This document shows, in pieces, positions 15,687-59,200 of a DNA stretch of 64,000 bases. The stretch spans positions 17,068 through 81,067 of the forward strand of contig NIVC01003162.1 in NCBI GenBank assembly GCA_002269645.1. The letters run 5' to 3'. Made by a program: the position numbers and the translations under genes. How positions within the stretch are numbered: the first letter of the stretch is position 1; every line of letters starts with the position of its first letter. The DNA comes from Macrostomum lignano (Eukaryota). The notes below the pieces were generated by a model, which was given only the letters and a program-made list of their open reading frames with translations, was not told the origin of the DNA and made no database searches.

Positions 15687-28284
<12,598 letters not shown>

Positions 28285-28409
28285 CGGAATTCCTATTCAG
28301 ATTGTTATGCTAGTGCACCTGTTGGATGGTGATTATTAATTCTCTATTTAAGACAGCTGAGTTGTGTACTGCGGTTTTTTGATGCTATCGTGTCTTTTCG
28401 GCCGATGTA

Positions 28410-29195
28410 GTAGGTTGATAATGTATTAGGTTGCCCGTGTGGTAGGTTGCCTGCCTTTGGTGTAGGGTGCCTTTGTGATAGGTTGCTAGTGTGGTAGGTC
28501 GCCCATGTGATAGGTTGCCCCTGTAATAGGTTGCCCCTGTAATAGGTTGCCCCTGTAATAGGTTGCCCCTGTAATAGGTTGCCCCTGTAGTAGGTTGCCC
28601 CTGTAGTAGGTTGCCCATGTGATAGGTTGCCCCTGTAATAGGTTGCCCCTGTAATAGGTTGCCCCTGTAGTAGGTTGCCCATGTGATAGGTTGCCCCTGT
28701 GATAGGTTGCCCCTGTAATAGGTTGCCCCTGTAGTAGGTTGCCCATGTGATAGGTTGCCCCTGTAATAGGTTGCCCCTGTAGTAGGTTGCCCATGTGATA
28801 GGTTGCCCGTGTGGTGGGTTGCCCGTGTGGTGGGTTGCCCGTGTGGCGGTTTGCCCATGTGGTGGGTTGCCCGTGTGGTGGGTTGCCCATGTGGTGGGAT
28901 GCCCGTGTGGTGGGTTGCCTATGTGGTGGGTTGCCCGTGTGGTGGGTTGCCCATGTGGTGGGATGCCCGTGTGGTGGGTTGCCCGTGTGGTGGGTTGCCT
29001 ATGTGGTGGGTTGCCCATGTGGTGGGTTGCCTATGTGGTGGGTTGCCTATGTGGTGGGTTGCCTATGTGGTGGGTTGCTTATGTGGTGGGTTGCCCATGT
29101 GGTGGGTTGCCTATGTGGTGGGTTGCCCGTGTGATGGGTTGCCCATGTGGTGGGTTGCCCGTCTGATGGGTTGCCTATGTGGTGGGTTGCCCGTG
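28410..29195. repeat. Bipartite 16-bp minisatellite (ataggttgcccctgta, then gtggtgggttgcccat)
   Basis: Two related sub-arrays meeting near 28800. Confidence 0.93.
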
Positions 29196-29899
29196 CGATG
29201 GGTTGATAACCTAGTAGATGGGACTGGGACTGGATGGGCTGCCCACCAAACAGATTCAATCAGATTTTCTTTAGAAATTGATTGCACATTCTGTCATTAT
29301 CATTGAGCACACCTCGTGATTTCTTTCACATGTAAACAATGCTCATATTGCCGTATTGTAATTTGCAGTCTAATTATATTTAGCCTTTTTTCGTGTTTTT
29401 TGTCCTTCTCAGCTTGTTTCGTCTTCTGTTACACTTTGAATATCCCCAATGCGCTACTTGTAAGTAGAGTCTGGTGTTTTTATCGCAGCATATATTGCTG
29501 TTCCATATTTACACGCAAGCAATGTCCTCAATCAGATGGGATTCCTAATTCTATAATTTTATGCACCTTTTTTAGCTTGCCAGCTTTTCTAAGAATAATT
29601 TCACTTGGCACAAACTATTCTGCCCATGTCCGATGTGCACTACTGGGAATCTCTAAGTAGTCCGATGCAAGTTTCATACTTTTTGCACGGTAATAATGAC
29701 ACTGTTTGTATGCTAATTCGGTTAGATCTTCCAGCTGCCTGGTTCTATTCTCAGATTCATTTTATTTTCAATAAAACTTTCCAATTGAATTGGTATGAAT
29801 GGATGCTACTTTCATGTCATTTAGATTTGCGATGCTAATCCTTGTATTGACAATTCTTAGAGACAACTTTGCATTCACGTCTAGAGGTGCTTATTGATT

Positions 29900-32700: not shown

Positions 32701-33324
32701 CTGCCGTCTAGATTAGTTTTTCCAGCTAATCAGAACTTCCGTTTAAACTCCAATTAAAATTCCAATCATGTTTATTTTCAATAGCAGATTTTAAGAAAGT
32801 AGTTGACATTTCGTGTGTAGTTTATTTTTACTTGATCCATTTTTGTTATATACTATTCTGTAAAATACTTTCGATCTCAGAGTGTTGCGTTATTTATATT
32901 TATATTTAAGAGTAGTAAAATTTTCATCTTGTTTTAGTAATCGCTGTTTTAATTTTATACCATAGTTCCATGCTATAAAATGGAATAATAATTCCATACT
33001 ATACCCTGCAGCCTTTGCTTAAACCATTATACCGAGTAATTTTTAATACTATGCTTTTACCACTGTGATATGTAAATCTATTTATCATGGGAATACAAGT
33101 TATTAGTACACTAACAGGCTAATCCGTTCTGTTTGCTGTGCAGTTTTCTGGTTACCAGCCGCACTATATATCAAATTAATACGCACATTAAACTGACAGC
33201 TGATTTATTCTCTATCTCCGTCACTTTCTCTTGTTTTTGAAAGGAGGGTACGAGCAGCATTGTGGAGGTTTAGTGTGGAGGATGAGGATGAGATTAGGTC
33301 AGAAGAAAGTAGTGGAAGTGTAAA

Positions 33325-35875
33325 GAGGGGCAGGGTGGATACAGGGGCGATAGAGGGGCAGGGTGGATAGAGGGGCAGGGAAGATAGAGGGGCAGGGTGG
33401 ATAGAGGGGCAGGGAGATAGAGGGGCAGGGAGGATAGAGGGGCAGGGAAGATAGAGGGGCAGGGAAGATAGAGGGGCAGGGAGGATACAGGGGCGATAGA
33501 GGGGCAGGGAGGATAGAGGGGCAGGGTGGATAGAGGGGCAGGAAGATAGAGGGGCAGGGTGGATAGAGGGGCAGGAAGATAGAGGGGCAGGGTGGATAGA
33601 GGGGCAGGAAGATAGAGGGGCAGGGAGGATAGAGGGGCAGGGAAGATAGAGGGGCAGGGTGGATAGAGGGGCAGGGAGATAGAGGGGCAGGGAGGATAGA
33701 GGGGCAGGGAAGATAGAGGGGCAGGGAAGATAGAGGGGCAGGGAGGATACAGGGGCGATAGAAGGGCAGGGAGGATAGAGGGGCAGGGTGGATAGAGGGG
33801 CAGGAAGATAGAGGGGCAGGGTGGATAGAGGGGCAGGAAGATAGAGGGGCAGGGAGGATAGAGGGGCAGGGAAGATAGAGGGGCAGGGTGGATAGAGGGG
33901 CAGGGAGATAGAGGGGCAGGGAGGATAGAGGGGCAGGGAAGATAGAGGGGCAGGGTGGATAGAGGGGCAGGAAGATAGAGGGGCAGGGAAGATAGAGGGG
34001 CAGGAAGATAGAGGGGCAGGAAGGATAGAGGGGCAGGGAAGATAGAGGGGCAGGGTGGATAGAGGGGCAGGGAGATAGAGGGGCAGGGAAGATAGAGAGG
34101 CAGGGAAGATAGAGGGGCAGGGAGGATACAGGGGCGATAGAGGGGCAGGGAGGATAGAGGGGCAGGGTGGATAGAGGGGCAGGAAGATAGAGGGGCAGGA
34201 AGATAGAGGGGCAGGGTGGATAGAGGGGCAGGAAGATAGAGGGGCAGGGTGGATAGAGGGGCAGGAAGATAGAGGGGCAGGGAGGATAGAGGGGCAGGGA
34301 AGATAGAGGGGCAGGGTGGATAGAGGGGCAGGGAGATAGAGGGGCAGGGAGGATAGAGGGGCAGGGAAGATAGAGGGGCAGGGAGGATACAGGGGCGATA
34401 GAGGGACAGGGAGGATAGAGGGCAGGGTGGATAGAGGGGCAGGAAGATAGAGGGGCAGGGAGGATACAGGGGCGATAGAGGGACAGGGAGGATAGAGGGG
34501 CAGGGTGGATAGAGGGGCAGGGAAGATAGAGGGGCAGGGAAGATAGAGGGGCAGGGAGGATACAGGGGCGATAGAGGGGCAGGGAGGATAGAGGGGCAGG
34601 GTGGATAGAGGGGCAGGGTGGATAGAGGGGCAGGAAGATAGAGGGGCAGGGTGGATAGAGGGGCAGGAAGATAGAGGGGCAGGGAGGATAGAGGGGCAGG
34701 GAAGATAGAGGGCAGGGTGGATAGAGGGGCAGGGAGATAGAGGGGCAGGGAGGATAGAGGGGCAGGGAAGATAGAGGGGCAGGGTGGATAGAGGGGCAGG
34801 AAGATAGAGGGGCAGGGTGGATAGAGGGGCAGGAAGATAGAGGGGCAGGGAGGATATAGGGGCAGGGAAGATAGAGGGGCAGGGTGGATAGAGGGGCAGG
34901 GAGATAGAGGGGCAGGGAAGATAGAGAGGCAGGGAAGATAGAGGGGCAGGGAGGATACAGGGGCGATAGAGGGGCAGGGAGGATAGAGGGGCAGGGTGGA
35001 TAGAGGGGCAGGAAGATAGAGGGGCAGGGTGGATAGAGGGGCAGGAAGATAGAGGGGCAGGGTGGATAGAGGGGCAGGAAGATAGAGGGGCAGGGAGGAT
35101 AGAGGGGCAGGGAAGATAGAGGGGCAGGGTGGATAGAGGGGCAGGGAGATAGAGGGGCAGGGAGGATAGAGGGGCAGGGAAGATAGAGGGGCAGGGAGGA
35201 TACAGGGGCGATAGAGGGACAGGGAGGATAGAGGGGCAGGGTGGATAGAGGGGCAGGAAGATAGAGGGGCAGGGAGGATACAGGGGCGATAGAGGGACAG
35301 GGAGGATAGAGGGGCAGGGTGGATAGAGGGGCAGGAAGATAGAGGGGCAGGGAGGATAGAGGGGCAGGAAGATAGAGGGGCAGGGTGGATAGAGGGGCAG
35401 GGAAGATAGAGGGGCAGGGAGGATACAGGGGCGATAGAGGGGCAGGGAGGATAGAGGGCAGGGAAGATAGAGGGGCAGGGAGGATACAGGGGCGATAGAG
35501 GGCCAGGGAGGATAGAGGGGCAGGGTGGATAGAGGGGCAGGAAGATAGAGGGGCAGGGAGGATAGAGGGGCAGGGAAGATAGAGGGGCAGGGAGGATACA
35601 GGGGCGATAGAGGGGCAGGGAGGATAGAGGGGCAGGGAGGATACAGGGGCGATAGAGGGGCAGGGAGGATAGAGGGGCAGGGAAGATAGAGGGGCAGGGA
35701 GGATACAGGGGCGATAGAGGGCCAGGGAGGATAGAGGGGCAGGGTGGATAGAGGGGCAGGAAGATAGAGGGGCAGGGAGGATAGAGGGGCAGGGAAGATA
35801 GAGGGGCAGGGAGGATACAGGGGCGATAGAGGGGCAGGGAGGATACAGGGGCGATAGAGGGGCAGGGAAGATAGG
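33325..35875. repeat. Purine-rich 16-18-bp minisatellite (gatagaggggcaggg(a/t)g)
   Basis: ~2.5-kb array with very few pyrimidines on +; source of the 926-aa spurious ORF. Confidence 0.96.
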
Positions 35876-36444
35876 GGGGTAGGGAGGTTAGAGGGGTAGG
35901 GATGATAGAGGAAGTATAGAGGGAATGGGACTATTACAGAGGCTGGGAGAGTGGCAGGGGTATAAACAGGAGCATGACAAGTCAATCTGCTCTACAAGTG
36001 CATCAAGGGAGAGCGGTTATTCGCAGCTCAGCATCGCAGAGTGCCTCCCGGGAGTTGGCATGGAACTGGCCGGATAAATTCAAATGTTTTTGCTGAGCCT
36101 GCGCTTAAAAAGCGGAATTTTTCGAGCCGTCGTTTTTTCACTTCGCAGCGGAGAGTCGGGCAGCCATTTCCCAATTAGCATGGGAGCGGCAGGGCAGGGC
36201 TGGGAACATCAAAATGAAGCCGTTTTAGTCCGGCTGGCGATTTCGGGGACTGCGCTGTCCGTGTGCCGAGCTGATTGTGAATTCTGCTGCTGCGATTCGG
36301 GATTAGTCTAGACAGATGAAGTGCTGGGAGGCTGGCTGCACTGGCTCGGGTGCATTGCCGGTTCAGTGGACTCGCGTCTGAGGTGATTGGGGATGGCTCG
36401 AGAGGTGATCGGGATGGCTCGAGAGCTGCAAATTTAGAGGTCGG

Positions 36445-38017: not shown

Positions 38018-40131
38018 ACAAACCTAGTTTTGTACCGATGAAAAAAAACTTTGAGAAGCTCAAGAAAATGAAAATCGGTTTCTCTCCTCTCTAATCTCTC
38101 TCTCTAGTCTCCCCTCTCCTCTCGCTTCTCTCTTATCTCCTCTTTTCTCTTCTTCCTCTATTCTCTTTCGTTTCCTCTCTCATCTGGCCAGCAGCCATGA
38201 ACTGGAATCTTCTAGAATAGGCCCTCGATCTAAAAAATTGTCTAAGTCTCCAGAGCGTTGAAGGGTTATACCACCCCATTAAGCTGGTTGTTTCGGCGCA
38301 AGATCTTCTTAGCATCAGCTTAAGTGCTTGGAAAGTCAGGCCAGTTTTGTGGGACATATTATAATACTCGTACTCTCAATTAGATTGTACACTAAACTGG
38401 CATAGATACCCTAAGCCTCTTCCTCTTCTCCAACGGGGTTGCAAAGAAAGCTATAAATAAAGTCATTTCAAAACACTGTACATTGCTACTGTATAAGCCG
38501 TATCTCACCTTTTGGTCTGGGGAAGGGATTGTAAACGTAGTGACTTGGAACTTGCCACCCGCTAAACTTTGTCAATTTAAATGTGCAGTTAAAGAGCTAA
38601 ATTTTAATACAAAATTCTAATCACGTGACGCCTGTTTATCGATCTAATTTTCCTTGGTCTGTGCGCGAAGCAAATAAAGCTTTATTGACGCCCCTCCGGC
38701 CCAAGCCCTCACGTCGTCACTCGTCAGTCCCCCCCCCGCTTAGAAGGACGGAAGTGTACATTGTATGTACGATTATTCCTTCCCTTCCTTTCCTTTCTAA
38801 CCAGCTTAACTCGGCCCCACGCCAAAGCCATGCAAGCAATCGCATGCAAATGCAAATTATGCAATGCGGTATTTCATATGCAGCATAATCTGATGAATTT
38901 TGGTGCAAAAAAGGCATTTTTTACCTCAAAAGAACAACGAATGGTTATGAAACTCAAGAAATTTGCTAAATTAACTGTATAGAACACTGTGTATTGGTTT
39001 CAGTGCAAAATTCCTACCATTACCCGGTTAATTACGAGCGTAGCCCCGGAAGTAGCAAAAGTGTCACAAATCAAGTTTTCAGTTTTTTATCGATAATTTT
39101 TTACCCAATGAACCGAATCTCTAGAAATTGCACACAAATAGGCCTCGTTATGTGGGAAATCAGGCGTCATAAAAATATTGCCGTCCTATTGCGTTTTTTG
39201 CCTGATTTCAAGCCAAATATTAAAAAATCACTACTCTGATCGATTTCCAATCACTTTTGACACAAGAGCACTTGTTGCAGACACTCAAAAACTTGGTCAA
39301 TTAAAGCCCGACATTAGTACAACTAATTGCAGTGTCCGCATTTGATCTACCATTCTTTTAAAATATTAATCATCCATTTTTCGGGCACCGAATCAGCCAA
39401 AATTCACAAATTATCGATTTCTGATCGATTTTTCAACCCGAAAGCATCGAAATCAGACGGCGGCAATTTATAGTACAGCAACTTTGCTATAGAAATTTGA
39501 AATCGGCTTTATTCGCACCATGTTCTCAAAATTATAATGAGCAATAATGCGAAACTCATGTGATTTTTTGAAAAATCGATTCTTGTAGATTTTCTCAGCA
39601 CTGCAGAATCGTAGGAAAACAAAACTTTAGACACTTGTAGATATTTGCATTGCGCATCTAACTGCACTGCTTTGAAGCCGAAACTCAAAAAGCTTCGTAG
39701 GAAAAAGTGGGGAGATAATAAAATGAGGGTATTTTTTTACCCAAAAAAACCCACCAAAACTGAATAAAGATGTCGAAATAAATTAAAGCGCCATATACCA
39801 TTTTGTAGTAAATTTAGTTTTACAACTTTGATCCTCAGATGTCGAAGCCGTATCTCGTTAAGGTGTACCAGAATTTTGAGATCTCCCAGAAGCACTTTTG
39901 AAAAAATCGTCTTTCCACTTAATTTACGGCTTAGTAATAAAATCTCTGCACTTAAAAGTATATTCATTCGATAGATCTAAAAGTTTTCTATCGATCGACA
40001 CCTCACTCAACTCAATCGGTGCAGTGGTTGCAAAAAAGGAGCATTTTTTGGCGAAAAAACGTGAAATTTAAAAATGCATGGGAGTCTAACTTATTTACCG
40101 GCGGCGCCGGACTCGGCTCGTTCACTGGTGG

Positions 40132-40742
40132 AACTAGAGCTGGTATAGACATCACAACTAGAGCTGGTATAGGCATCACAACTAGAGCTGGTATAGGCAT
40201 CACAACTAGAGCTGGTATAGGCATCACAACTAGAGCTGGTATAGGCATCACAACTAGAGCTGGTATAGGCATCACAACTAGAGCTGGTATAGGCATCACA
40301 ACTAGAGCTGGTATAGGCATCACAACTAGAGCTGGTATAGGCATCACAACTAGAGCTGGTATAGGCATCACAACTAGAGCTGGTATAGGCATCACAACTA
40401 GAGCTGGTATAGGCATCACAACTAGAGCTGGTATAGACATCACAACTAGAGCTGGTATAGGCATCACAACTAGAGCTGGTATATATAGACATCACAACTA
40501 GAGCTGGTATAGGCATCACAACTAGAGCTGGTATAGGCATCACAACTAGAGCTGGTATATATAGACATCACAACTAGAGCTGGTATAGGCATCACAACTA
40601 GAGCTGGTATATATAGACATCACAACTAGAGCTGGTATAGGCATCACAACTAGAGCTGGTATATATAGACATCACAACTAGAGCTGGTATAGGCATCACA
40701 ACTAGAGCTGGTATAGACATCACAACTAGAGCTGGTATAGAC
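40132..40742. repeat. 24-bp minisatellite (aactagagctggtataggcatcac)
   Basis: Tandem array with occasional tata-insertion variants. Confidence 0.96.
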
Positions 40743-42005
40743 GCCAAACAGCCGGGGCCTCTGATATCGAATGTCAGACTGGCCCAGTTGAGTATAAATT
40801 AGCCATTGCCCGATGAAAATCGCAGGCAGGCTGTTGTGCGCAGCTTCCTGTTATTTCTGCTCGATGCTTTCAGGTGCAAATAATTGTAAGCCATAAAAGC
40901 GGAGGATTTACGCTGCTTTTAGCTGATGGGGACGGACCGGCATCCTTCATCATGCTTGCTTGGGATCGAGTGGAGTTGTGGGTGCCCGGGTTTGCAGATC
41001 AAACGAGTGGCAGCCCACATCTCCTTAATTGAGTTATCAACACGGCTGCCCCTGTGCTCAGATATCGCCGATTTGCAATAAATATCCCATATCCCCATTT
41101 TTTGCTTCTCCTCCCATGGGGTCCCGGCCGGTTTCAGACCCCCCCAGTAAAAGGCTTGTAGGGGAATGATGACGAGAGGCGTCAAATAAAGATGCTAACA
41201 AAATCGGCAGATCAGCAGACAGCTCAGAGCTAATTATTCGTTCCGGTCAAGCGCGGGTTGTTAAAGTGCGCCCAAATGCAGCAGAGGCTGAATCAATATT
41301 TCAAGTTTGCACTAATTTATTTTTGGCCCGCTTGCGTGTTTGCCATCGCCTGCCTGCTACAGTCAGCATTGCTATTATTACCATGATGACTCAAGCCCGA
41401 TTGCTGCGGAGTCCGGGCTTGAGCACGTGTGTGGGCGGCTGCTCTCGGTTGCTGGGAGACCGACAGTAGAGAAAGGAAACTAGCAACGTCGCTGACAATA
41501 CCATCCGGTTGCTACGAGAGTTTCAAACTCCTATGAAGAGACGAAGAGCCACTGTGTCTCGTAAAGTGGCGATCGATACCGGATCCGGAATGGTAAAGAT
41601 TCTATTTTAATCATAGATTCATAGACCAGGAAGTTCAACCATAGACAATCAATCCTGGCGCTGGAGAGGAGATTGCAACTGAAAGCTACGAGTATAATAG
41701 TTGCCACTATAAAAAAACAAAAAAATGAATTTCTTTCACCTTAGACCTAAAGGTGATTTTGCCATAGAAAAAATCAATTCTGTTCGCTTGATCGTGAAAG
41801 ACTGATCAATTGACGTATTCTCACCGATTGGGGCTACGTAAATTAAAATTGCTACTCAACTCCAACCTGAGCACCGCACTTACAAGGGGGGCTTCAGGAC
41901 GCACCCACACAAGGCTTCACCAGAGTCTGGACGCAGTGGTACAGCCTGGGGCTGGCACACATTGGCCGGTACGCCTCGGTAAGCTCTGGCGGGTCTTAAT
42001 TCGAT

Positions 42006-42044
42006 TGCTCTAGATTGAGTTAAGTAAGAGACCGTCTTTCCGGC
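42006..42044 (-). ncRNA. Spliced-leader (SL) RNA-like sequence lacking the ATG|GT donor (variant gene or pseudogene)
   Basis: Minus strand reads GCCGGAAAGACGGTCTCTTACTTAACTCAATCTAGAGCA. The first 22 nt differ at one position from the Macrostomum SL as I recall it (GCCGTAAAGACGGTCTCTTACTGCGAAGACTCAATTTATTGCATG), and ACTCAAT is also shared. The reference is from memory and needs checking. Confidence 0.55.
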
Positions 42045-42805
42045 TAGCAAGGAGAGAAAATCAAGACGTGAACACGACACCACACCCCAACACACGGCGT
42101 CAGTAATTAAATATCTACGGCCCGCGGAGGGGGGAGGCCAACAGCCCTCCAACCCACCACCCCATCGATCCCAACCCGCGCCAGCCAACCACACCGCCAG
42201 GGGGGGAGGAAACACCGATCCCCCCGCCGCTCGGCCCAGCCAATCAGAACGCAGTAAGCAACAAATAGTACAGAAGCTGAACGATAAGTCATAGTAAAAA
42301 AACGCCCGGCTTGAACCAATTGATGCATGTGGGGACAAACTGAGTCAACCTGGCACTGAAACAAAAGTGCATGCAGAAAACAACAGTAATAAAAGTATTG
42401 AGTGCAAGTTTCACTAATAGATCGATAAAATTGACTCTTAGTCACTCAGAAGTTAGCAATGGAAAATCTTTTTTAAAATGAACATTACTACGCCTTTACA
42501 CTTTCATTAAGCCTGGAGACGAAAAAAGCTTTAATGTTTCAAGCAATTTAGCCAGCCCATCTTGGTCTGGGGGATAGATTGGCATTGTACGTATTGAGGC
42601 AATGCTGCCAGTGTTTGTACTACAGCCGGGTAGGGACCGAGAGAGTTTCCAATTGGTGAAAAGGTGCCTTCGCAACCAACGCCCTTGAAGCTAATTTTTT
42701 GTTTGCTACGTCAATCAGGGCCAAAGCCAGTGGGAGCCGGGGCGGGCGGCCTCCTCACTCCGCCGCCCTCTCGTCCCCCCCCCCCCCCGGCGGGTCAGAT
42801 TGCGT

Positions 42806-42906: not shown

Positions 42907-43326
42907 ATGCCGACTGCCGCGCACTGCCGCCAGCCGCACCAGCCGCCGCCGCTGGCCCTGCTACTGGCTCTGCTATTAATTTGCCTGGGCGCCCAGCTGC
43001 CAAAAGCGGCGGCGCAGAACGCCGAGGTCGAACGAATCTGCGGCCAAAATCCGTTCGAAAGGCTGAAGCAGATCGCCGAAAATATTCTGCAGAGAACTCT
43101 AACAGGCCGTGAGTAGCTGCTCAGGTTGCTAACCGATAATATCAAACAGCTTAAACTTCGCGTTGCTAACCCCGGCAGCCACTCCCTTTATTCCGGTAAT
43201 TTTGCAGCCGAGTTCCACATCCTGTTCAACCGGGCGCTTAGCGATCCGGAGAAGGGCCCGCGGCTGAAGGCTGCGGTCACCCGCTACCAGGAGTGCAGCC
43301 TGGGCGTGGAGAACAGCCACTTCTGA
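42907..43326 (+). CDS. Small secreted protein of unknown family (~106 aa)
   Basis: Exon 42907-43108 (signal-like LALLLALLLICLGAQLPKAAA/Q), 99-nt intron gtgagt 43109 to ttttgcag 43207, exon 43208-43326 in frame (EFHILFNRALSDPEKGPRLKAAVTRYQECSLGVENSHF*). Confidence 0.7.
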
Positions 43327-44379
43327 ACTGGTGGCGCAATGCTAACTGACTGAAATAGACACACCCGCACCTGGCCTACTCACCGGGCAGTGTTTAATCA
43401 AGCACCTCTTATTCACTCACCTCTTCCGGCACCAGTTTTGTGTTATTCAATTCAATTTTAATCGGGTCGCAACAGCGAAATACAAATTTGAGCTAGACAA
43501 ATTCTAGGACATGAGTCAACCTCATCTCAACCGGGTATCTGATTATAAACTAACAGCTTTTGAGCAAGCAAAATAAAAACAATTGAGAGGATGCGTCTGT
43601 TACCGTGATGGCTTTTTGCAATTATTGTTATCAGCTTGTAGAAGAAATCAGATTAGTTGCGAAGAGAGTCAAGCAACCCCACAGGCCGAAGGGATTGTGA
43701 TTGATTCTATGGAAGGTCTAATCATTGTGGCAATCACAATTTGTATTAGGCTATTATTAATATAGATAATTGGGCGAATGTCTGGTGGAGTGAGCCTGTT
43801 CATAATTAGTGTTATTGTAATGCACTTATTTAAATAAATAAGCAGAGCAAATGTGATTGAAGTTGCCAGTGAGATACACAAATATGCGGCCACATATAAG
43901 AGGGTTTTAGAGAGAAAAAATATCGACAAAGGAGCGGTTGGCAACTACATGTATCTACTGTCTAAGTTAATTTGAAGCAAAGAAGACAGACAGAAGCAGA
44001 AAAAATGATCGGAATAGCGTAGACTTCAAGTGTTCAGTAAAAATAAAACTTCAACAAATTAAAAACTAAGGCCTTCAATAATAGAAAATATCGAATATAG
44101 ATTAATTGGCCCAGCTTCACTTCACGCAATCCAGAAACCCGATAGGCCAAGGTAATAAAATTTAATCGATAATTGAGGCATCTGACCTAATTTCATGGTG
44201 GATGTCCTCGGCAGACCTCGCAAAGTGCAAAGCTAAATTTAGCAACAGAAACACAGCAAGAAAAAGTCGGTGTAACTAGGATTCCTGGTTCTCCGAATAC
44301 ATAATATTGCAGCGGGAACCCCCCACGCCTCCGTGCGTGCTTTTAACGTCGATTTCACTGCCACTATTTGACTGCCGAC

Positions 44380-45090
44380 CAAACCCCAACCACAACCAAA
44401 ACCCCAACCACAACCCCAACCCCAACCACAACCCCAACCACAACCACAACCCCAACCCCAACCCCAACCACAACCCCAACCACAGCCCCAACCCCAACCT
44501 CAATCACAACACCAACCATAATCACAACACCAAATCAAACACAACCCCAACCCCAACCACAACCACAACCCCAAACCAAACTACAACCCCAAACCAAACC
44601 ACAACCCCAACCACAACCCCAACCCCAACCACAACCCCAACCACAACCACAACCCCAACCCCAACCCCAACCACAACCCCAACCACAGCCCCAACCCCAA
44701 CCTCAATCACAACACCAACCATAATCACAACACCAAATCAAACACAACCGCAACCCCAACCACAACCACAACCCCAAACCAAACTACAACCCCAAACCAA
44801 ACTACAACCCCAAACCAAACCACAACCCCAACCACAACCCCAATCACAACACCAAATCAACCACAATTCCAACCACAACTCCAACCCCAGTCACAACATC
44901 AACCACAACCACAACACGAAATCAACCACAATTCCAACCACAACCCCAACCCCAGTCACAACATCAACCACAACCACAACACGAAATCAACCACAATTCC
45001 AACCACAACCCCAACCCCAGTCACAACATCAACCACAACCACAACCCCAACCCCAGTCACAACCCCAACCCCAACCACAACCGCAACCCA
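44380..45090. repeat. A/C-rich 6-bp-based repeat (aacccc/aaccac) with internal duplications
   Basis: Source of the PQPQ/TTPT/NPNH low-complexity ORFs. Confidence 0.92.
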
Positions 45091-45312
45091 AAAATAATCG
45101 GCAGTCAAAAGCCGGGCTCCCGATTTAGACAGGCCTAGCATTCAGAATTCCCTACGGAGAACTAACTTGACGATATGTTTAGAAAACCAATTTATCCCAA
45201 AGGTAGGCGAAGACAGCACCAACTTGAAGATTAATTACGAGCGTATAATTGACAATATAATGTAAGGTAGGCCACAGAACATCATCCTCTCCATTAGAAT
45301 CTGCGCTGGAAT

Positions 45313-48156
45313 TCAAAAGAACTCGGAGTCCGAGCTCTGGCTGGTGTCGCCTCCGCCTCCGCTGCGACCGGCAGCTCCGCCGTCCCGATGCGTTACGCCG
45401 CCATCGTTGTCGACCTCGGCGCTAACAGCGGCAGTGGCGGCTGCTCCGCCAGATGCGTCGCAGTCGTCTTCGTTGGCCTGCAGCAGCGAGGAGCGAGACC
45501 GGAGCAGCAGGCGGGAGAAGCTGGGGAACATGGCGGCCAGGAGCAGCTGCAGGCACTCGGCTGTGCGGGCCGAGCTGGCGCAGGCCAGAGCGGGTACGCC
45601 GCCTTCGGCGTCGGCGCAGAATAGGTTGGCCTTCTTGCTGATCAGGTGCTCAACAACGCCGGGCAGGCCGTTGCCGGCTGCCAGGTGGATTGGCCCTCGA
45701 CCAGCGCTGTCCAGCTGCGGCAGGACCAAGGCGAGTCAAGGCGTGCGGTTAGCGCGGGTGGCAACCGCTTGCAGCAAGAATTGAAGGTTGCTTAGGGATT
45801 TTGGGTCACTTGAGGACTCTGGGTCACTTGGGGATTTTGGGTCATTTGGGGACTTTAAGCCACTTAGGGACTTTGGGTCACTTGGGGATTTTGGGTCACT
45901 TGGGGATTTTGGGTCAGTTAGGGATTTTAGGTCAGTTAGGGACTTTAAGTCACTTGGGGACTTTGGGTCAGTTAGGGATTTTGGGTCACTTGGGGACTCT
46001 GGTTCACTTGGGGACTTTGGGTCACTTGGGGACTTTGGGTCACTTGGGGACTTTAGGTCACTTAGGGACTCTGGGTCACTTGGGGACTCTGGGTCACTTG
46101 GGGACTTTGGGTCACTTGGGGACTTTGGGTCAGTTAGGGACTTTGGGTCAGTTAGGGACTTTGGGTCACTTGGGGACTTTGGGTCAGTTAGGGATTTTAG
46201 GTCAGTTAGGGACTTTAGGTCAGTTAGGGATTTTGGGTCAGTTAGGGACTTTAAGTCACTTGGGGACTTTGAGTCACTTGGGGACTTTGGGTCACTTGGG
46301 GACTTTGGGTCACTTGGGGATTTTGGGTCAGTTAGGGACTTTGGGTCAGTTAGGGATTTTGGGTCACTTGGGGACTCTGGGTCACTTGGGGACTTTGGGT
46401 CACTTGGGGACTTTGGGTCAGTTAGGGACTTTGGGTCACTTGGGGACTCTGGGTCACTTAGGGACTTTGGGTCACTTGGGGACTTTGGGTCAGTTAGGGA
46501 CTTTGGGTCAGTTAGGGACTTTGGGTCACTTAGGGACTTTGGGTCACTTGGGGATTTTGGGTCAGTTAGGGACTTTAGGTTAGTTAGGGAATTTGGGTCA
46601 GTTAGGGATTTTGGGTCACTTGGGGACTTTGGCCTGTTTAGAATAGAAAAAACCTGACTCAATAGAGGATAGAATTGAAAAACAATCACTCCGACACTCA
46701 TCACTCACAGCATTGATGAGATCAGGATCCACTATCCGCTCCAATAGGAGAAGAGCGGCTCCCTCGTCGCTAGTAGAGCAGGCGTGATGCAGACAGGTCC
46801 TGCCGTCGGCGTCAACCACCGACACGGAGGCGCCGGCATCAAGCAACAGGCTGGTGGCAGCGGCGCGCGCCTTGCCGGCTGCCAGCAGAAGCGGCGTAGC
46901 GCCTTCAGCGTCGGCGACGTCAACGGTGGCGCCGTAGCGAAGCAGCAGGCTGGCAGCTTCGCAGTGATCGCCGTGCGCGGCGGCGTGCAGCGGGGTTCGA
47001 CCACGCGAGTCGCGTCCGTCCACCTGGGCGCCGGCCTCTAGCAGGAGCTCAACGCAGGTGTCGTGGCCGCGGCCGGCGGCGCAGTGCAGCGGGCTGTAGG
47101 AGTTCCAGGCGCGCCAGACTGGCTTCTGCTCTCCGAGGCTGGCGGGGCCGGCGGTGTCGGCGGATGCCGCTGCAGCAGCAGCTCGACGCAGCGCGTGAAG
47201 CCATGGTAGGCGGCGTAGTGCAGCGCCGAGTAGCCTTTGGCATCGATGCTGGCCGCAGCTTCGGGGTTGTTGCCGATGGCCGTGAGCAGGCGGTCGGTGG
47301 TGGCCTCGTGGCCGCAGGCGGCCGTCATGTGCAGCGCGTGGCGCTTTCGAAAATCGCGCGCCAGCGGATTGGCGCCAACTTTGATGAGTAGCTCAGTGCA
47401 GTCGTCGTGACCGTTGGCGGCGGCACGGTGCAGGGCGGTCCTCTCGTAGACGTCGGGCATCTGCGAATCGGCGCCTACCTTCAACAGCAGGCGGGCGGCC
47501 TCCAGGTGGCCGTTCTGGGCGGCCAGCATCAGCGGCGTGCGGTCGTGCGCATCGGCGCTGTCGATCAGCGGCCGGCCTCCGCGGCTCCACAGCATCGCCT
47601 GGAGGACGCCGACGTGGCCAGCAGCGGCGGCGTAGTGAAGGCCGTTCCAGCCGAACAGGCCGTCCACCATCTCCAGTGCGCAGCCGCTGCTGTCCAGCAA
47701 GGTCTTAACTGCGCCCAGGTGGCCCTGGTGGGCGGCCAGGTGCAGCGGCGTGCGGCCCTGCGGATCGGCGGCCGAATTTGCGGGACTCTCCGGGGCCAGG
47801 TGCTTGGCCAGGAGGCTCAACACCTCATCGTGGCCGTGATAGGCGGCCAGGTGCTGCGGGCTCGGCGAAGAGTTCCAAGCGGCCCGGAGCACGGTGGCCC
47901 TGGTGGCGTCCAGCAGGCGGGCGACGGTGTGCCGGCTGCCAGCGCGGGCGGCGAAGTGCAGCGGCAGCAGCGGGCCGAGCTCGGGGAATTCAGCCGTCTG
48001 GCACGGATCGGCGCCGTGCAGCAGCAGCTGATCGGACAGCTGCGGGTCGCTGGCGGCGGCCAGGTGCAGCGGCGTGAGGCCCTGCCTGTCCGCCTGGCCC
48101 GGCAGGGAGCCGCCGTTCAACTGAGGGGCGAAGACGGAGAGGCATAGGATTAACGG

Positions 48157-48209
<53 letters not shown>

Positions 48210-48214
48210 CACAC

Positions 48215-48252
<38 letters not shown>

Positions 48253-51200
48253 GGACAGACAGACGGCAGCTCACCAGAGTCACAGCCGCATTCCGATGCC
48301 CCTTGGCGGCGGCATAGTGCAGCGGAGTCCGGCCCACCGAGTCCAGGGCATTGGGATCGGCGCCCTTGCCTAGCAGATATTCGACGCACTCAACGCGCCC
48401 ACCAACGGCGGCCGCATGCAGGCAAGTTCGGCCGAATGCGTCAAGCCGGCCGATGGCCAGCGGCTGGGCCAGCGTGAGCCGCTGGACGCAGTCAAAATAG
48501 CCGGACAGGCAGGCAAGATGCAGCGGCGTGAGCTGGCTGGGCCCGACTGGCCGGTCAGGCGAGGCGCCGGCCTTCATCATCACGTCAAGGAAGAGGTCGT
48601 GGCCTCGCATCGCGGCGACGCTGAGCGGAGTGTAGCCGGAGGCATCGACAGAGTCGGGCACGGCGCCGGCGGCCAGCAGCGACTGGGCGCGAGTGAACCG
48701 GCCGTGAACAGCGGCCATGTGAAGTGGAGTGCGGCCCTCCAGGCAGACCGCGTTCACGTTGGCATCCTCGTGAATTAGCCAGTCTAGGCACTGAGCGCTG
48801 TGCGTGCCTGCAATGTAATGATTTGAAATGAAGGTGAGAAGGTGCTTCTTCTCAGGGTTGAACATACACTTAAGGGGGGTGGTCGGTGTTGCATGTACTC
48901 TAGGGAGGCTGGGTGGTCGGTGTCGCATGTACTCTAGGGAGGCTGGGTGGTCGGTGTTGCATGTACTCTAGGGAGGCTGGGTGGTCGGTGTTGCATGTAC
49001 TCTAGGGAGAGGCTGAGGTGGTCGGTGTTGCATATACTCTAGGGAGAGGCTGGGTGGTCGGTGTCGCATGTACTCTAGGGGGAGGCTGAGGTGGTCGGTG
49101 TTGCATGTACTCTAGGGAGAGGCTGGGTGGTCGGTGTTGCATGTACTCTAGGGAGGCTGGGTGGTCGGTGTTGCATGTACTCTAGGGAGAGGCTGGGTGG
49201 TCGGTGTTGCATGTACTCTAGGGAGAGGCTGGGTGGTCGGTGTTGCATGTACTCTAGGGAGAGGCTGGGTGGTCGGTGTTGCCTGTACTCTAGGGAGAGG
49301 CTGGGTGGTCGGTGTTGCATGTACTCTAGGGAGAGGCTGGGTGGTCGGTGTTGCATGTACTCTAGGGAGAGGCTGAGGTGGTCGGTGTTGCATATACTCT
49401 AGGGAGAGGCTGGGTGGCGGGTGTCGAATGTACTCTAAGGGAGGCTGGGTGGCGGGTGTCGCATGTACTTTAAGGGAGGCTGGGCAAAGGCCGCAGCACG
49501 CACCCGCAGCGGCCAGATGAATGGCAGTCTGTCCCAGCTGGTTCTGAGCCTCCAGCTCCACCCCGGCCAGCTCGGAGCACAGCTGGTCGTTGCCATTGAG
49601 GCAGGCCACGTGCAGCGGCGTGTTGCCCTGCAGGGTGGCCGCGTTGACGTCGGCACCCAGGTCGACCAGCTTGCGCGCGGCGAAGATATTGCCGCAGGCG
49701 GCGGCCGTGTGCAGCGGAGTGAAGGCCTGCTTATCGCGAGCGTTGATCTCAGCGCCGTGGCGGACCAGCAGGTCGATGAGATCCACGCTGCCGTTGTAGG
49801 CGGCCCAGTGCAGGGCGCGCCGGTCGCGCTTGTCGAATGCGTTGACCATGTCCGGCGAGCGGGACAGCAGAAGCTCGGCCACTTCCGGGTGGCCGTTGAA
49901 TGCGGCATGGTGCAGCGCCGTGTGGCCAGCCCGATCGCTGACGTTCGGATTAGTCAGATGAGGCAATAGAAGCTGGGCGCACTCAACCGCATTGTTGGCG
50001 GCGGCCACGTGCAGCGGGGTCTGCCAGTTGCGATCGCGGCATTGGACCTCGGCCTGGGCATTGGGAAGGCATTGGGGCGGCTAAGAGGTTGTCTATGGGC
50101 TAAGCTGTGCGGCCTCGGCTGCGATCGATAGTTACTTGGACTCGCTTATGAGTGATTTATGATCCTTTTTAAAACACTTTTGCCTAAATTTATGAGCGTA
50201 ATTGTAGTTGTTTGGCATCATTTATAAGCGGTTTCCGAGTGGTTAAGCTATATTTATGAGCGATTCATAAGTTTCAGCATCATGTATGAGTGATTTTTAT
50301 TGTATTTTGCCTAGTTTATGGGCGCTTTCTAGCGGTTATTTCTCATTCGTTAGCGTTTATTAAATTTTTCATTGATGGTCTTATTGGCGAGCAATGAATG
50401 GCTCAACTGCTTCAGGTCTCATTGGTGAGCTATGGCTAAACTGCTTCAGGTCTCATTGTGATGAATGGCTCAACTGCTTCAGTTCTCATTGGTGAGCAAT
50501 GGCTCAACTGCTTCAGGTCTCATTGTGATGAATGGCTCAACTGCTTCAGGTCTCATTGGTGAGCAATGGCTCAACTGCTTCAGGTCTCATTGTGATGAAT
50601 GGCTCAACTGCTTCAGGTCTCATTGTGATGAATGGCTCAACTGCTTCAGGTCTCATTGGTGAGCAATGGCTCAACTGCTTCAGGTCTCATTGTGATGAAT
50701 GGCTCAACTGCTTCAGGTCTCATTGTGATGAATGCTCAACTGCTTCAGGTCTCATTGATGAGCAATGGCTCAACTGCTTCAGGTCTCATTGGTGAGCAAT
50801 GGCTCAACTGCTTCAGGTCTCATTGTGATGAATGGCTCAACTGCTTCAGGTCTCATTGTGATGAATGGCTCAACTGCTTCAGGTCTCATTGGTGAGCAAT
50901 GGCTCAACTGCTTCAGGTCTCATTGTGATGAATGGCTCAACTGCTTCAGGTCTCATTGTGATGAATGGCTCAACTGCTTCAGGTCTCATTGGTGAGCAAT
51001 GGCTCAACTGCTTCAGGTCTCATTGGTTGTTGCAATGTCAGTCTCATCGGTATATTTTAAAGATATTTTAGCCAAAGAACACTGATAAAATGTGTTTTCA
51101 TAACGGGCGGGAATAGGTCACAGCTCCACACCCAGTTGGAGAGAGTGAGTTCGCAGATTGACAGGTAGAGATGAGGATAGAAAGAATGAAGAGTATCAGC

Positions 51201-52788
51201 GATCCCGCATATTCAATATGCCAATACTGAGGCTGACGAATACACAACGGGTCAAGCAGTTTTACTGCAAGTTTTCAACCCCCTCAATCCATCTGTGTAT
51301 TCAGCCAGCATTTTGTGAGAGCGCCTAAATTTAATGGACACAGGGAGGCTGCAGGGACGAAAAGCCAATTAGCAGTCAGTTGGCGTAGGATCGCTGCAGA
51401 GGACCTAAGCTATCTATCCAGCCTTCGGATAGCTCATTAAATATTTATGATCTCGACGCGAACGGGAAACGCATCTCTTGGCTTGTTAAGTTTCTAGGAA
51501 AAATTGATTGGGGGTCTGTTTTGAATTTGATTTTTTTGCATTGCTATTCGTGTATGGCCGTGTACTTTTATTGAGCACTAAAGTTAATTTGTTTGATATA
51601 TTTGACAGGGCAAGCACCGGAGGGCAAACACCGGAGGGCAAACAAAGGAGGGAAAACACCGGAGGGTAAACACCAGAGGGCAAACACCGGAGGGCAAACA
51701 AAGGAGGGCAAACACCGGAGGGCAAGCACCGGAGGGCAAACACCAGAGGGCAAACACCGGAGGGCAAACACCGGAGGGTAAACACCGGAGGGCAAACACC
51801 GGAGGGTAAACACCAGAGGGTAAACACCGGAGGGTAAACACCAGAGGGTAAACACCGGAGGGCAAACACCAGAGGGTAAACACCGGAGGGCAAACACCGG
51901 AGGGTAAACACCAGAGGGCAAACACCGGAGGGCAAACACCAGAGGGTAAACACCGGAGGGCAAACACCAGAGGGTAAACACCGGAGGGCAAACACCGGAG
52001 GGTAAACACCAGAGGGTAAACACCGGAGGGCAAACACCAGAGGGCAAACACCGGAGGGTAAACACCAGAGGGCAAACACCAGAGGGCAAACACCGGAGGG
52101 CAAACACCAGTGGGCAAACACCGGAGGGCAAACACCAGTGGGCAAACACCCGAGGGCAAACAAATCCTGCTTAATATAAATAATAGGGCAAAACTGAACT
52201 TAATCTTTGATTCGATCTCTTTGGAATGCGATTCAATACCAGATTTTGCACCGCCACTGTCTCCATTGTCATTGTCCCAATGGGTTCGCGTTCACTCCAC
52301 AAACTCCAGATTTCACAAACGGTTTCTCTCATCGATTTCAGTTCGTTCGTGGCCAAATTAATAATTAAAGCAGGGAATGTTTATTTTTTTTGACGATATG
52401 AGAAGGCCATGGCCGCCAAATCTTCAATCCCACTAAAATACTCGCTGAAGTGTGCACAGACCTGATGATCAAGCAGCACCTGAACGCATCTGGCAGACTT
52501 GCTAGCGCAGGCTCGATGCAACGGCGTGTACCACTTGCTGTCCTTGCAGTTAACCCTGGCCCCGGCGCACAGCAGCAAGCTGGCAATCTCGGGCTCGTCC
52601 AGGTGCGCGGCCGCGTGCAGCGCTGTCCTCTTCTCGGCGTCCTGGGCGTTGATCTCCTCGCGCTGGGCGGACAGAACGCAGCGGACGCCGTCAGGATTGC
52701 TGGCGAACGCCTCCTGAATGAGCTCCGGCGCCGCGTCCAGCTTCAGCATGATCAATTGCGGTCGGTGGCGCTCGGCGGGGGATGACAT
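45313..52788 (-). CDS. ANKRD28/44/52: PP6 regulatory ankyrin-repeat subunit (ANKRD28/44/52 family), with one apparent frameshift in exon 4
   Basis: Exons 52788-52462 (EKRTALHAAAHL...DSKWYTPLHRACAS), 50053-49504 (RDRNWQTPLHVAAANNAVECA), 48807-48275, 48120-46709, 45714-45313 (PALACASSARTAECLQLLLAAM...SDSEFF*). Repeat order follows the family throughout. Exon 4 is 1412 nt (3n+2), with a frame switch near 47110-47175. Confidence 0.92.
45790..46630. repeat. 18-bp minisatellite (tgggtcacttggggactt / tgggtcagttagggactt), ANKRD intron 4
   Basis: Two interleaved unit variants carrying TTGGGG or TTAGGG. Confidence 0.96.
48157..48265. repeat. (GACA)n microsatellite, ANKRD intron 3
   Basis: Direct observation. 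Confidence 0.95.
48875..49480. repeat. 34-36-bp minisatellite (gggtggtcggtgttgcatgtactctagggagaggct), ANKRD intron 2
   Basis: Tandem array filling most of the intron. Confidence 0.95.
50390..51025. repeat. 33/34-bp minisatellite (atggctcaactgcttcaggtctcatt...), ANKRD intron 1
   Basis: Two unit types, partly arranged as 33+33+34 = 100-bp blocks. Confidence 0.94.
51610..52162. repeat. 14-bp minisatellite (aaacaccggagggc), ANKRD intron 1
   Basis: Tandem array. Confidence 0.95.
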
Positions 52789-53074
52789 GAAGCGTAAAGG
52801 GAACAAAGCTTAATAATACAATAAACAGACACAGCTATGCACCAGTTTACCTTCAAGTGTTATTAAACTAATTTGGGTTCAATTCAAACTACCTGAACTT
52901 CAATTGAGACACGAAAGAATGCATTTGGATGGTTATTGCGGAAATTCAATTCAGACTCAACTCTCTATTCTATAGGCTAAATTGTCGTATATATTCTGAC
53001 AGCTTATGGCTAAAACTGATTTTGAGCGACTGGATAGAAGTTTGAAACAAACAGACAACCGCTACACTTTTGAA

Positions 53075-56224: not shown

Positions 56225-59200
56225 TCAACGCCGATTGAGCGCCATCAAATTAAGCCGGATGGACAGCACGCCTTTGGGATATTTGTGCAGATAGACTACG
56301 CACGAGAACTGCACTTTGGGCACAGCGTCGCTGCTATCTACGTACATGCCGATCTCGTGCAGCTTCGTATTGCGCACCTCCTGCAGAATTTCGTCAGTGG
56401 ACATGTAGCCGACTCGCATTGAGTAACCAACAATCTACAAGTTTTGTCGTATATTAAAATAAGTTAATTAATCTGTTTTGTCTACTTTAAGTACAAAGTT
56501 GCGATAAATTTCTTACAATTTTGCTCGCAAATTGCTTGTTGTAGTTTTCTCTGGCTGCTAGTAGCTGACTGGCCTCAGGATTATAGTGATAAATCTCCAT
56601 GCTGCGGTGATGAAGATTTTGTTGTTGTAAGTAATAGACTGCAGATACTGTGTGACGGCTAAATGTACACCGGGGTCGGGTGGCTGTGGCTAGCAAATGT
56701 ACATTGGGGTGGGGTGGCTGTGACTAGCAAATGTACATTGGGTTGGGGTGGCTGTCACTAGTAAATGTACATTGGGGTGGGGTGATTGTAGGTAGTAAAT
56801 TTACATTGGAGCGGGGTGGTTGAGGCTAGCAAAAGTACATTTGGGTGGGGTGGTTGTGGCTAGCAAATGTACATTGGGGCTGGGTGGTTCTGGCTAGCAA
56901 ATGTACATTGGGGTGGGGTGGCTGTGACTAGCAAGTGTTACACTGAGGCTGGTAGGTTGTTGTATCATAGCAAAATTGACGCTATGATACGGTAGAAAAG
57001 AATTTGATTTTAACTCTCACTATTTGAGCAGGTCGCGAATCTCCCTGCTACCGGCATTGTACCACAGTGTGGGCACCCTGGGCCGCCACTCGCTGATAGC
57101 TTTGCGCAGGGTTATCTCGATCTCGTACTCGATGTTGGCAATATCTGAGTCGCCAACTGGTCCGCCCGAATAGTTAATCGGCTGCTGGATGCATTCGAAA
57201 GTTCGTTCGTTAGGCTTCTCAATGTGAAGCCAGTAGTTCTGATCAGTGACGCCATAGTTGAGCACGCGAACACCTTCGAATGGCTTCTTGTTGATGTACA
57301 CACCACCTGCAGATATGAGGCAGTCAATGCTGATCAGGGGGCAGCGATCGCCCATGGCGTTGAACCGGAGGCCTAGCGAAGGATTCCACACGTATTTGTC
57401 GTTGCCATCGACTTCTACCACATAAGCGGTGGAGCCTTCTGGTACCGCGTTGCCAAGTGCCAGGTAGATTTGAGTGCCAGTGCCCTGGCTGAGGTGGAGC
57501 AGATAATTAGCTAGCAGCACGGCGTGCTCCTCTTCATCTCCGGCTTGGTAGTCCATGAACTCCTGCGCGAAGGGCAATTGGCGATCGTTGTCTAATGGAC
57601 AGTGTCTGTGACACCCACCCCACTCTTGCGTACACCATCGATCTAGAAACCCACCCCACTAGCTCCTTTGCGATCGACCTAAACACCCAACTGACCCCTT
57701 ATGTACACTATCGATAGACACCCACCCCACTCCTATGTGCACTATCGATCTAAACACCCACCCTACTCCTATGTACACTATCGATCTAAACACCCACCCT
57801 ACTCCTATGTACACTATCGATCTAGACACCCACCCTACTCCTATGTACACTATCGATCTAAACACCCACCCTACTCCTATGTACACTATCGATCTAAACA
57901 CCCACCCTACTCCTATGTACTATCGATCTAACACCCACCCGACTCCCTATGTACACTATCGATCTAAACACTCACCCACCTCAATCTCATGTAGACTATC
58001 GATCTAGACACCCACCCCACTCCTTATGTACACTATCGATCTAGACACATTCCACATCAATCCATGAGTACAATGTTTGCGACACCAACCCAGCGGTAAA
58101 ACACATACGCACCCTCGATATAAAAGTTTGTCTTATTGCATTACCTCGCAAGTGTTCCAAATATCGATTAGGCCAGGAAAAGCTGAGGCATCGCTCACAA
58201 ACGGCACCAAGGAGACGTAGTTAGCGATGATTAACTGAAAAAATGATGAATGGATTGCATTGATATAGTGGCTTGACTGTGATAAACAACTTAACGAGAG
58301 GCTTAGAACTGACCTTCTTATGCTGGGGATCAGTAACTTCCTGGCCTCGCGAGAACAGCTCAGGTGGTGGTGCCAAACCAGTGGGACTCAGATAGCAGGA
58401 AACAAAGACCTCCTTGACCTCCATGCTAACAACGAAAGCTCGCGGGTGATAAAGAAACTCTTCAACTTGAGCTTCCGGATTTGATTGCATCTGGCGCATG
58501 ACGCCGGCAACTTCGTCGGCGAGGCGACTCAAGGTGTTCTTGGTGGCGCGAACCCACTGCCTGGCGGGCTCGTGCACCGTGTCGAATGCCTGCTGCAGCA
58601 GGCCAGGCCTGGCCAGGTGCGGCTGCAGAGTGATGAAGACTCGGAGCGCCGGGGCGCGCGGCCGCCTGCGAGCGGCGCCATCGCCGGCCCCGGAGCCACC
58701 GTAGCCGGTCACCAAATCCGGGACGCGAAGCTGCAGCCGGCCCTGCACTTTCTCGTTGATGTACACGGTTGAGAACGGAATGGACACGCTGCCAAGGAAG
58801 TGCTTCTCTTGAACAACAACAGAGCCAACGTCTGCGGCCTGCTGGCCCTCGGCTGGCCGACTGTAGGTTCTATCGTTGAACACCTTCAGCACCAGCGGGT
58901 CGGATATGGTCTCGGGCTTCTGGGTGGCATTGCGCAGACGGAACGGCAGCTCCAGACTGGCATTCCAGTCCGGATTCGTGCCAGACATGGTAGCCGTGCG
59001 CAGAGTGTTGCCCTGCGGCGGAGTGCGCAACGTTATTATATATTCTGCTATTATATTAGCACGGTTTCGCATAGCAACTAACAGCTTGACCTACTGCTGT
59101 GTGAACCTAATACTAATCTTTAATAGAAATAGTTCCTAGTGGGAAACTTCCATTGGGAATAGTTCCTAGTTGGAAACTTCCATTGGGAATAGTTCCTGTT

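Follow-up and report, generated by a model that had tools for sequence, protein, structure and literature searches.

The minus strand of a Macrostomum lignano contig carries a sequence that begins like the spliced leader (SL) RNA of the genus and lacks a splice donor, which raises the question of whether the locus is a working RNA of the SL family, the relic of an SL RNA gene, or the head of an SL-derived mobile element. An earlier sequence-only reading of the window, by which we mean the whole 64-kb stretch of contig NIVC01003162.1 analysed here, had offered all three. By its coordinates the window spans 17068-81067 of this contig (assembly GCA_002269645.1), and over the 1,401 nt compared around the locus the two were 100% identical. 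The analysis favored the SL pseudogene, with homology that reaches into the intron and with donor, AUG and Sm site all lost, and the mobile-element head found no support.

From 42044 the minus strand reads GCCGGAAAGACGGTCTCTTACTTAACTCAATCTAGAGCAATCG, and the variant leader at the locus is GCCGGAAAGACGGTCTCTTACTTAACTCAATC. The published Macrostomum leader is GCCGTAAAGACGGTCTCTTACTGCGAAGACTCAATTTATTGCATG (PMC5173321; PMC10468722 supplement file 2; PMC8629364), and it is identical in M. lignano, M. cliftonense and M. hystrix, except that 1-2 5'-terminal nucleotides are absent in some assembled leader sequences (PMC5173321, PMC10468722, PMC8629364). At the locus 21 of SL nt 1-22 are identical to it, the sole change being T5 to G, at a loop position of the GCCG/CGGU mini-hairpin at the 5' end, and ACTCAAT is also common to both. 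The sequence-only reading had given this match, and the published leader agrees with it. The remainder of the exon (nt 23-43) is eroded: GCGA(A)G is deleted or TA stands in its place, ACTCAAT is retained, and the exon end has changed from TTATTGCATG to CTAGAGCAATCG, with loss of the terminal ATG, which now reads ATCG.

The match is significant. When up to 3 mismatches were allowed, the 22-mer occurred once in the 64-kb window and in 0 of 100 shuffles. BLAST against a canonical SL RNA gene aligned nt 1-22 with E=2e-5 and nt 1-43 to 42044..42006 with 77% identity, a 4-nt gap and E=7e-4, and 42044..42006 was the single significant match to that gene in the window. The resemblance to the SL is far beyond chance. 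A functional SL RNA gene would be required to carry the leader as it is found on mRNAs; here the identity over nt 1-43 is the 77% just given. The minus-strand sequence, hairpin, U-rich run, AT-rich box and CCAAT that had been described earlier all lie where they had been placed (Table 1).

Table 1. Features of the SL-like locus and its surroundings, and the two comparator SL RNA genes. Positions are those of the window, except for the comparators, which are numbered on their own contigs.
Feature	Position	Strand	Remarks
SL-exon-like segment, 43 nt	42002..42044	minus	5' 22 nt near-perfect, remainder eroded
Former splice-donor region AATTAAGACCCG	41990..42001	minus	homologous to G/GTAAGACACCG (slash, exon end); GT to TT, one A deleted
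Possible SL RNA body remnant	41935..41989	minus	homology not statistically established
Hairpin CAGCC-CCA-GGCTG	41954..41942	minus	occupies the place of stem-loop III
GTAAGT, consensus 5' splice-site hexamer	41878..41883	minus	118 nt downstream of the lost donor
3' arm of predicted long-range helix (16+5 bp, several G-U)	41852..41873	minus	pairs with 42027..42006
U-rich AATTTTAATTTA	41839..41850	minus	candidate Sm-like motif (A-U4-A-A) or T4 run
AT-rich box ATATTTAATTAC	42114..42103	minus	-70 to -59 from the first G
CCAAT	42240-42244	plus	
BOX15_Mlig030769g3, divergent neighbor	42907..43326	plus	exons 42907-43109, 43208-43326
L006 canonical SL RNA gene	615-722		JGI metagenome contig Ga0302322_100095745
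L007 canonical SL RNA gene	1589-1693		JAGQZA010000190.1, 3.7 kb, deposited as part of a Flavobacteriaceae MAG

The M. lignano SL RNA gene (109 nt) has been published as a figure (PMC8629364), and comparators were therefore taken from environmental contigs. We scanned public contig collections for GCCGNAAAGACGGTCTCTTACT and obtained two contigs with canonical macrostomid SL RNA genes, L006 and L007, which are 95% identical over the gene; a scan of viral contigs returned zero matches. As intron comparators these genes represent environmental macrostomids and not M. lignano. Both carry the exact 45-nt leader and, in order after it, GTAAGACACCG, GATCCA...TGGATC as a stem-loop, AUUUUUAG as the Sm-type site and AGCCC...GGGCU as the terminal hairpin, and the L006 SL RNA folds as three stem-loops with z=-3.1.

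Compared with these genes, the similarity at the locus continues past the exon. In a position-constrained global alignment, canonical nt 23-56, comprising the rest of the exon and the donor region, matched the next 35 nt of the locus with p=0.004 against shuffles and p=0.0025 against real window segments. The intron start GTAAGACACCG is represented by TTAAGAC-CCG exactly at the expected place, and TAAGAC-CCG is expected by chance only 0.002-0.007 times in that 20-nt interval. Past nt 56 the alignment did not reach significance, with p=0.03 when shuffles served as the null and 0.11 when real segments of the window did. Homology of the kind that marks an SL RNA pseudogene, with intron sequence included, is thus present at p ~0.003. 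Because the similarity crosses the exon-intron boundary and runs ~10 nt into the intron, the source of the locus, as judged from its sequence, is an SL RNA gene or unspliced SL RNA and not a spliced mRNA.

A covariance model built from L006 and L007 aligned with the locus from end to end (42044..41935, model positions 1-108), with a score of 13.6 bits compared to 125-133 bits for the real genes; the E-value was 0.019 when 4 kb were searched and 0.72 for 148 kb. A score of 13.6 bits is what would be predicted for a heavily eroded copy. In this alignment CGGUCUCUUA still pairs with UAAGAC-CCG at the base of stem I, and the hairpin CAGCC-CCA-GGCUG is retained as a counterpart of stem III. That the base of stem I can still form, between the exon and the former donor region, counts against a plain pseudogene.

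Several parts of a canonical SL RNA gene are missing at the locus. In place of a GU donor directly after the leader (ATG/GTAAGAC, the slash marking the exon end) it has ATCGAATTAAGAC at the homologous position, and the earlier description of an SL-family sequence without a donor holds; the other GT dinucleotides stand in poor context until GTAAGT at 41883. Canonical genes carry the Sm site AUUUUUAG between stem-loops II and III, and the homologous position here reads AAUGUGUG (41963..41956, minus strand), which leaves no Sm site between them. Stem-loop II is unrecognisable. The predicted fold of the 107-nt unit is not more stable than those of shuffled sequences (z=-0.7, compared to -3.1 for L006), and of the three-stem-loop fold only the stem I base and the stem III-like hairpin align. 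The essential elements lost are the donor, the AUG, the Sm site and stem-loop II, and with their loss donation of the leader is impossible.

The upstream sequence had been proposed for comparison with SL promoters, and we recognised no upstream or 3'-box motif common to the locus and to L006 and L007; this comparison is weak evidence because L006 and L007 barely resemble each other upstream. An Rfam search of the whole window at gathering thresholds, and of the locus at E<=10, returned nothing relevant. Since Rfam misses even the canonical macrostomid SL RNA, the want of an Rfam match at the locus is also weak evidence.

Considered together, we regard the locus as probably an SL RNA pseudogene of ~110 nt (42044..41935, minus strand), that is, a decayed copy of an M. 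lignano SL RNA gene. Its source was such a gene or the unspliced RNA, and erosion has removed every trans-splicing element, turning the GU donor into UU and taking the terminal AUG, the U-run of the Sm site and stem-loop II. Most probably the locus does nothing; we infer that it is not expressed and that it has no function.

The divergence from the canonical gene is uneven (Poisson p ~0.012, Fisher p=0.036): nt 1-22 carry 1 change and nt 23-56 ~10 substitutions or indels, while the 3' half is close to random. Such a pattern is not predicted by uniform neutral decay. Functional SL genes may have converted part of the copy, the copy may be chimeric in origin, or its 5' end may be under constraint.

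The number of copies bears on the claim that the locus is the head of a mobile element. The locus is single copy in the 64-kb window, and one near-identical copy was found, on a second contig, NIVC01002166.1, where the same locus has 99.86% identity. Outside tandem repeats the two contigs differ by ~0.1%, and there is one 1-nt indel at 42129; they are alleles or a very recent duplicate. Because it is ~99.9% identical, the duplicate contig says nothing on selection. We also sought the SL-like head, allowing up to 4 edits, in 57 kb of other M. lignano DNA (L003-L005) and did not find it; these are paralogous orphan-gene loci, they contain no SL-like element, and their flanks could not be aligned. 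An SL-derived SINE or other mobile element finds no support in these counts, the locus being single copy in the window, absent from L003-L005 and present elsewhere solely in the duplicate contig, and no sign of a repeat family was seen.

Three further searches by way of proteins were also negative. An ORF at 41880-42338 on the minus strand overlaps the locus; its translation was sought among predicted proteins, where neither an exact record nor a homologue was found. Eleven contiguous ORFs of the window, sought as exact records, were likewise absent, since the M. lignano entries are spliced gene models. When the ankyrin-repeat neighbor gene was used to seek orthologous loci, generic ankyrin proteins swamped the result and no Macrostomum sequence was among them.

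The locus had been said to lie head to head with an orphan secreted gene, and this was borne out. The gene is BOX15_Mlig030769g3, which is divergent on the plus strand, starts 863 nt from the SL-like 5' end and has as its product an orphan protein of 106 aa, whose N-terminus resembles a signal peptide and which contains no Pfam domain; the translation from the window is 100% identical. It is context and lies outside the SL-like element.

Among the other explanations, the one that survives best is a transcribed, functional, SL-derived RNA of ~110-230 nt that does not donate a leader, in which the SL 5' end, serving perhaps as an intragenic promoter or to bind proteins near the cap, was kept and joined to a new body; we consider it unlikely. 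In Ascaris the 22-nt SL doubles as an intragenic promoter element for its own gene, which counts in favor of such an RNA, as do the significantly better preservation of the first 22 nt relative to the rest and the retained base of stem I. Its predicted fold also counts in its favor. The 200-nt version (42044..41845) folds with z=-2.1 and forms a G-U-rich 21-bp helix between the SL-like segment and the sequence just before AAUUUUAAUUUA. The half-vs-half duplex has a predicted energy of -59.5 kcal/mol (null -48 +/- 5.3, p ~0.02) and is much weaker on the opposite strand (-45 kcal/mol). Against this, the fold statistics are marginal, the duplex being equalled by 90 of 638 genomic tiles, and the significance of the predicted long-range helix is accordingly rated as marginal. 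We also considered whether the SL-like segment had been duplicated in inverted orientation in the DNA, and rejected this as not significant (p ~0.22).

In one variant, this RNA might be of Sm class through AAUUUUAAUUUA at 41850..41839, loosely by analogy with the SmY RNAs of nematodes. SmY RNAs have a conserved Sm site between two stem-loops, come from conserved multi-copy genes and contain no SL-like sequence. Both they and an RNA from this locus would be non-donor small RNAs tied to SL trans-splicing; unlike SmY RNAs, the locus shows neither a clear Sm site between two stem-loops nor, in the DNA compared, a multi-copy state. The Sm-site candidate AAUUUUAA at 41850 stands ~195 nt from the 5' end, its predicted flanking structure is of marginal significance, and the motif is a common AT-rich string, with ~0.19 such U-rich motifs expected per 250 nt. 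The homologous position has no Sm site, there is neither a 3'-box-like nor an upstream motif in common with canonical genes, Rfam gave no match (a weak point, as it misses the canonical macrostomid SL RNA too), and no independent copy or orthologue was found in which covariation might be seen. Of the SmY-like snRNA proposed by the sequence-only reading, membership of the SL family and the missing donor stand, and the snRNA itself gains no support and stays an unlikely candidate, with no Sm site at the SL position and no recognisable flanking signals in common with canonical genes.

A bolder form of the same idea is that the locus is a transcribed member of an unrecognised class of flatworm SL-family RNAs that are unable to donate a leader. 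Such an RNA would be of Sm class, with the SL 5' end and stem I as its base, or else an SL variant with a long exon (with GTAAGT at 41883 and the U-rich motif at 41850), and its first 22 nt would be selectively preserved as an intragenic promoter or as a platform for cap-proximal proteins. We hold this to be rather improbable.

Also improbable, in our judgment, is that the SL fragment, possibly with its promoter, now begins a conventional Pol II transcript that is spliced, whether of a lncRNA or of a gene missing from the annotation, with exon 1 at 42044..41884, a GTAAGT donor at 41883 and an orientation divergent from the orphan gene. The hexamer lies 161 nt from the putative start where 0.04 are expected per 250 nt, the sequence after it is AT-rich as in genuine M. 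lignano introns, e.g. at 3947(-), and the arrangement is head to head with Mlig030769g3, at a distance of 863 nt that includes G-rich and CCAAT-containing sequence. One splice-site hexamer is weak evidence, however, and in the 9 kb downstream there is no annotated minus-strand gene in either assembly copy and no long ORF. The GTAAGT at 41883 is probably incidental or the donor of such an ordinary first exon.

A decayed processed retrocopy of an SL-trans-spliced mRNA, with the leader joined to an mRNA body, is highly unlikely. SL sequence does occur at the 5' end of at least one genomic gene, Mlig013257.g1 (PMC8629364), and the similarity at the locus begins exactly at SL nt 1. The exon-like part is directly followed by the SL-intron sequence TAAGAC-CCG, which a spliced mRNA would not carry, and the presence of the intron start thus argues against a retrocopy, provided that the M. 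lignano SL intron is taken to contain TAAGACACCG. Downstream of the locus we noticed neither an ORF nor a poly(A) tract nor a target-site duplication.

The U-rich motif lies 34 nt after GTAAGT, near the canonical donor-to-Sm spacing of 32 nt, and an Sm-like motif 25-45 nt downstream was found at only 2 of the 99 GTAAG sites in the window. The other of these two is an ordinary intron, that at 3947(-), which follows a protein-coding exon and has the same GTAAG-plus-U-run pattern; we treat the pairing at the locus as a lead only. An active variant SL RNA with a 161-nt exon, the GTAAGT donor at 41883, that Sm-like site 34 nt on and a weak 3' hairpin is scarcely credible: although the short strings GTAAG, CGGTG, AGTA, TTTTA and AGCCC follow in canonical order, the sequence after GTAAGT aligns to canonical introns no better than at 27 of the 99 GTAAG sites in the window or than 50% of shuffles, the covariance model with filters off finds nothing there, the terminal hairpin does not form, and a single SL is reported for M. 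lignano (PMC8629364, PMC12582326). A second partial SL unit at 41939..41815 (ACTGCG..AGACTC, GTAAG, CGGTG, U-run, AGCCC) was likewise tried and rejected; its local alignment gave p ~0.25, it was no better than other GTAAG sites, and the covariance model was blank there.

The SL RNA pseudogene that we favor can be set beside several known systems. With the canonical Macrostomum SL RNA gene the locus shares 21/22 nt of the 5' end, ACTCAAT, the intron start TAAGAC.CCG, a stem I base that can pair, a 5-bp G+C-rich hairpin near the 3' end and a length of ~107-110 nt. Unlike that gene, it has no GU donor, AUG, AUUUUUAG Sm site or stem-loop II, and its flanks are not recognisably similar. Animal genomes also contain dispersed snRNA pseudogenes and variant snRNA genes. 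Like these, the locus is an isolated, diverged copy of a multi-copy Sm-class RNA gene that starts from the first nucleotide of the RNA, whereas it shows no A-rich tail or target-site duplication.

The closest parallels are in parasitic flatworms. In Schistosoma and Fasciola, SL RNA loci that have no donor and negligible evidence of trans-splicing are read as pseudogenes, among them Unique_SL-18 of S. bovis, Unique_SL-20 of S. haematobium and Unique_SL-37 of Fasciola hepatica (PMC12582326). Aberrant SL copies are also described in S. mansoni (PMC2770079) and in C. elegans and Hydra (PMC7346339). The parasite pseudogenes are similar to the locus in that they derive from SL RNA genes, do not conserve the donor and are isolated variants beside a multi-copy functional family. 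They differ in being neodermatan and only mildly diverged, whereas in the M. lignano locus erosion of the 3' two thirds has gone much further, with loss of AUG and Sm site as well. Read as a pseudogene, the locus is of an already known kind, here in a free-living macrostomorph.

The published M. lignano survey sought only 100% matches to a 35-nt SL, and diverged SL relics would escape it because full identity was required (PMC8629364). If the locus is a pseudogene, its value is mainly for annotation, in that the M. lignano genome contains diverged SL RNA relics, and reads could be wrongly assigned to it when SL-based trimming or the calling of SL sites allows relaxed matches. It would also add a free-living macrostomorph case to the SL RNA pseudogenes of parasitic flatworms. 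Were the locus instead to prove a working RNA of the SL family that has no donor, it would be the first in Platyhelminthes and would bear on the origin of accessory trans-splicing RNAs from SL genes.

Canonical macrostomid SL RNA genes were found on two environmental contigs and served as comparators for the probably decayed SL-like copy in the window. The SL RNA intron was approximately 95% conserved between these two macrostomids (contigs L006 and L007), and in both it was laid out as GTAAGACACCG, stem II, AUUUUUAG and stem III. Even at E≤1, the L006 gene had no match in Rfam 15. The record containing the L007 gene, JAGQZA010000190.1, is labelled "MAG: Flavobacteriaceae bacterium isolate HKST-UBA79", that is, a bacterial MAG, and only two ORFs of at least 80 aa were present across its 3.7 kb. 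L007 is almost certainly flatworm DNA that was mistakenly binned into a bacterial MAG.

Features located in the window and on the two environmental contigs
Feature	Location	Strand	Remarks
Canonical macrostomid SL RNA gene	L006 615-722		JGI metagenome contig Ga0302322_100095745
Perfect Macrostomum-type SL RNA gene	L007 1589-1693		JAGQZA010000190.1
CTTACTGCG	window 42258..42250	-	identical to SL nt 17-25
Direct repeat CCGC..GGGGGGAGG	window 42122-42137, 42194-42209	+	72 nt apart
Direct repeat CCAGCCAA..	window 42181-42197, 42236-42252		55 nt apart
Non-LTR retrotransposon	window 17981-22917	-	reading frames apparently intact
Exon with mucolipin extracytosolic domain	window 15687-16766	+	
Ankyrin-repeat gene, multi-exon	window 45313-52806	-	resembles protein phosphatase 6 regulatory ankyrin subunits
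Exon with CEP76 peptidase-like domain	window 57020-57577	-	
Minisatellite-type tandem repeats (1)	window 2170-3030; 8780-10240; 28340-29300; 33200-36000; 40000-40750		
Minisatellite-type tandem repeats (2)	window 44300-45130; 45740-46700; 51490-52160; 59110-59600		

Three recognizable genes or exons were present in the window (ankyrin-repeat, mucolipin-type and CEP76-type). In the retrotransposon, the 1272-aa ORF2 carries an endonuclease, a reverse transcriptase and an RNase H domain; upstream of it lies an ORF1-like frame of 372 aa, for which a comparison with Pfam gave no match. Minisatellite-type tandem repeats are dense throughout the window and create spurious long ORFs in several frames, and the array at 40.0-40.75 kb, immediately downstream of the SL-like locus, has a 24-nt unit.

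Tandem repeats also accounted for nearly all differences between the window and the duplicate contig L002. A single C/T difference was observed at window position 43209 (+), where it falls on base 2 of exon 2 in the divergently oriented orphan gene, and it coincides with a changed gene model in L002: Mlig030769g1 on the duplicate contig is 77 aa in length, versus 106 aa for Mlig030769g3. An annotation artefact or a damaged allele may explain the 77-aa model.

The sequence CTTACTGCG lies upstream of the SL-like head, at a distance of approximately 210 nt, and contains the GCG that is absent from the head itself. Its match to the SL is probably due to chance (BLAST E=5.5), though it could be an additional SL fragment. 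The DNA that separates the SL-like locus from the orphan gene is rich in G/C runs and also contains the two pairs of short direct repeats, CCGC..GGGGGGAGG and CCAGCCAA.., which may belong to a shared divergent promoter region.
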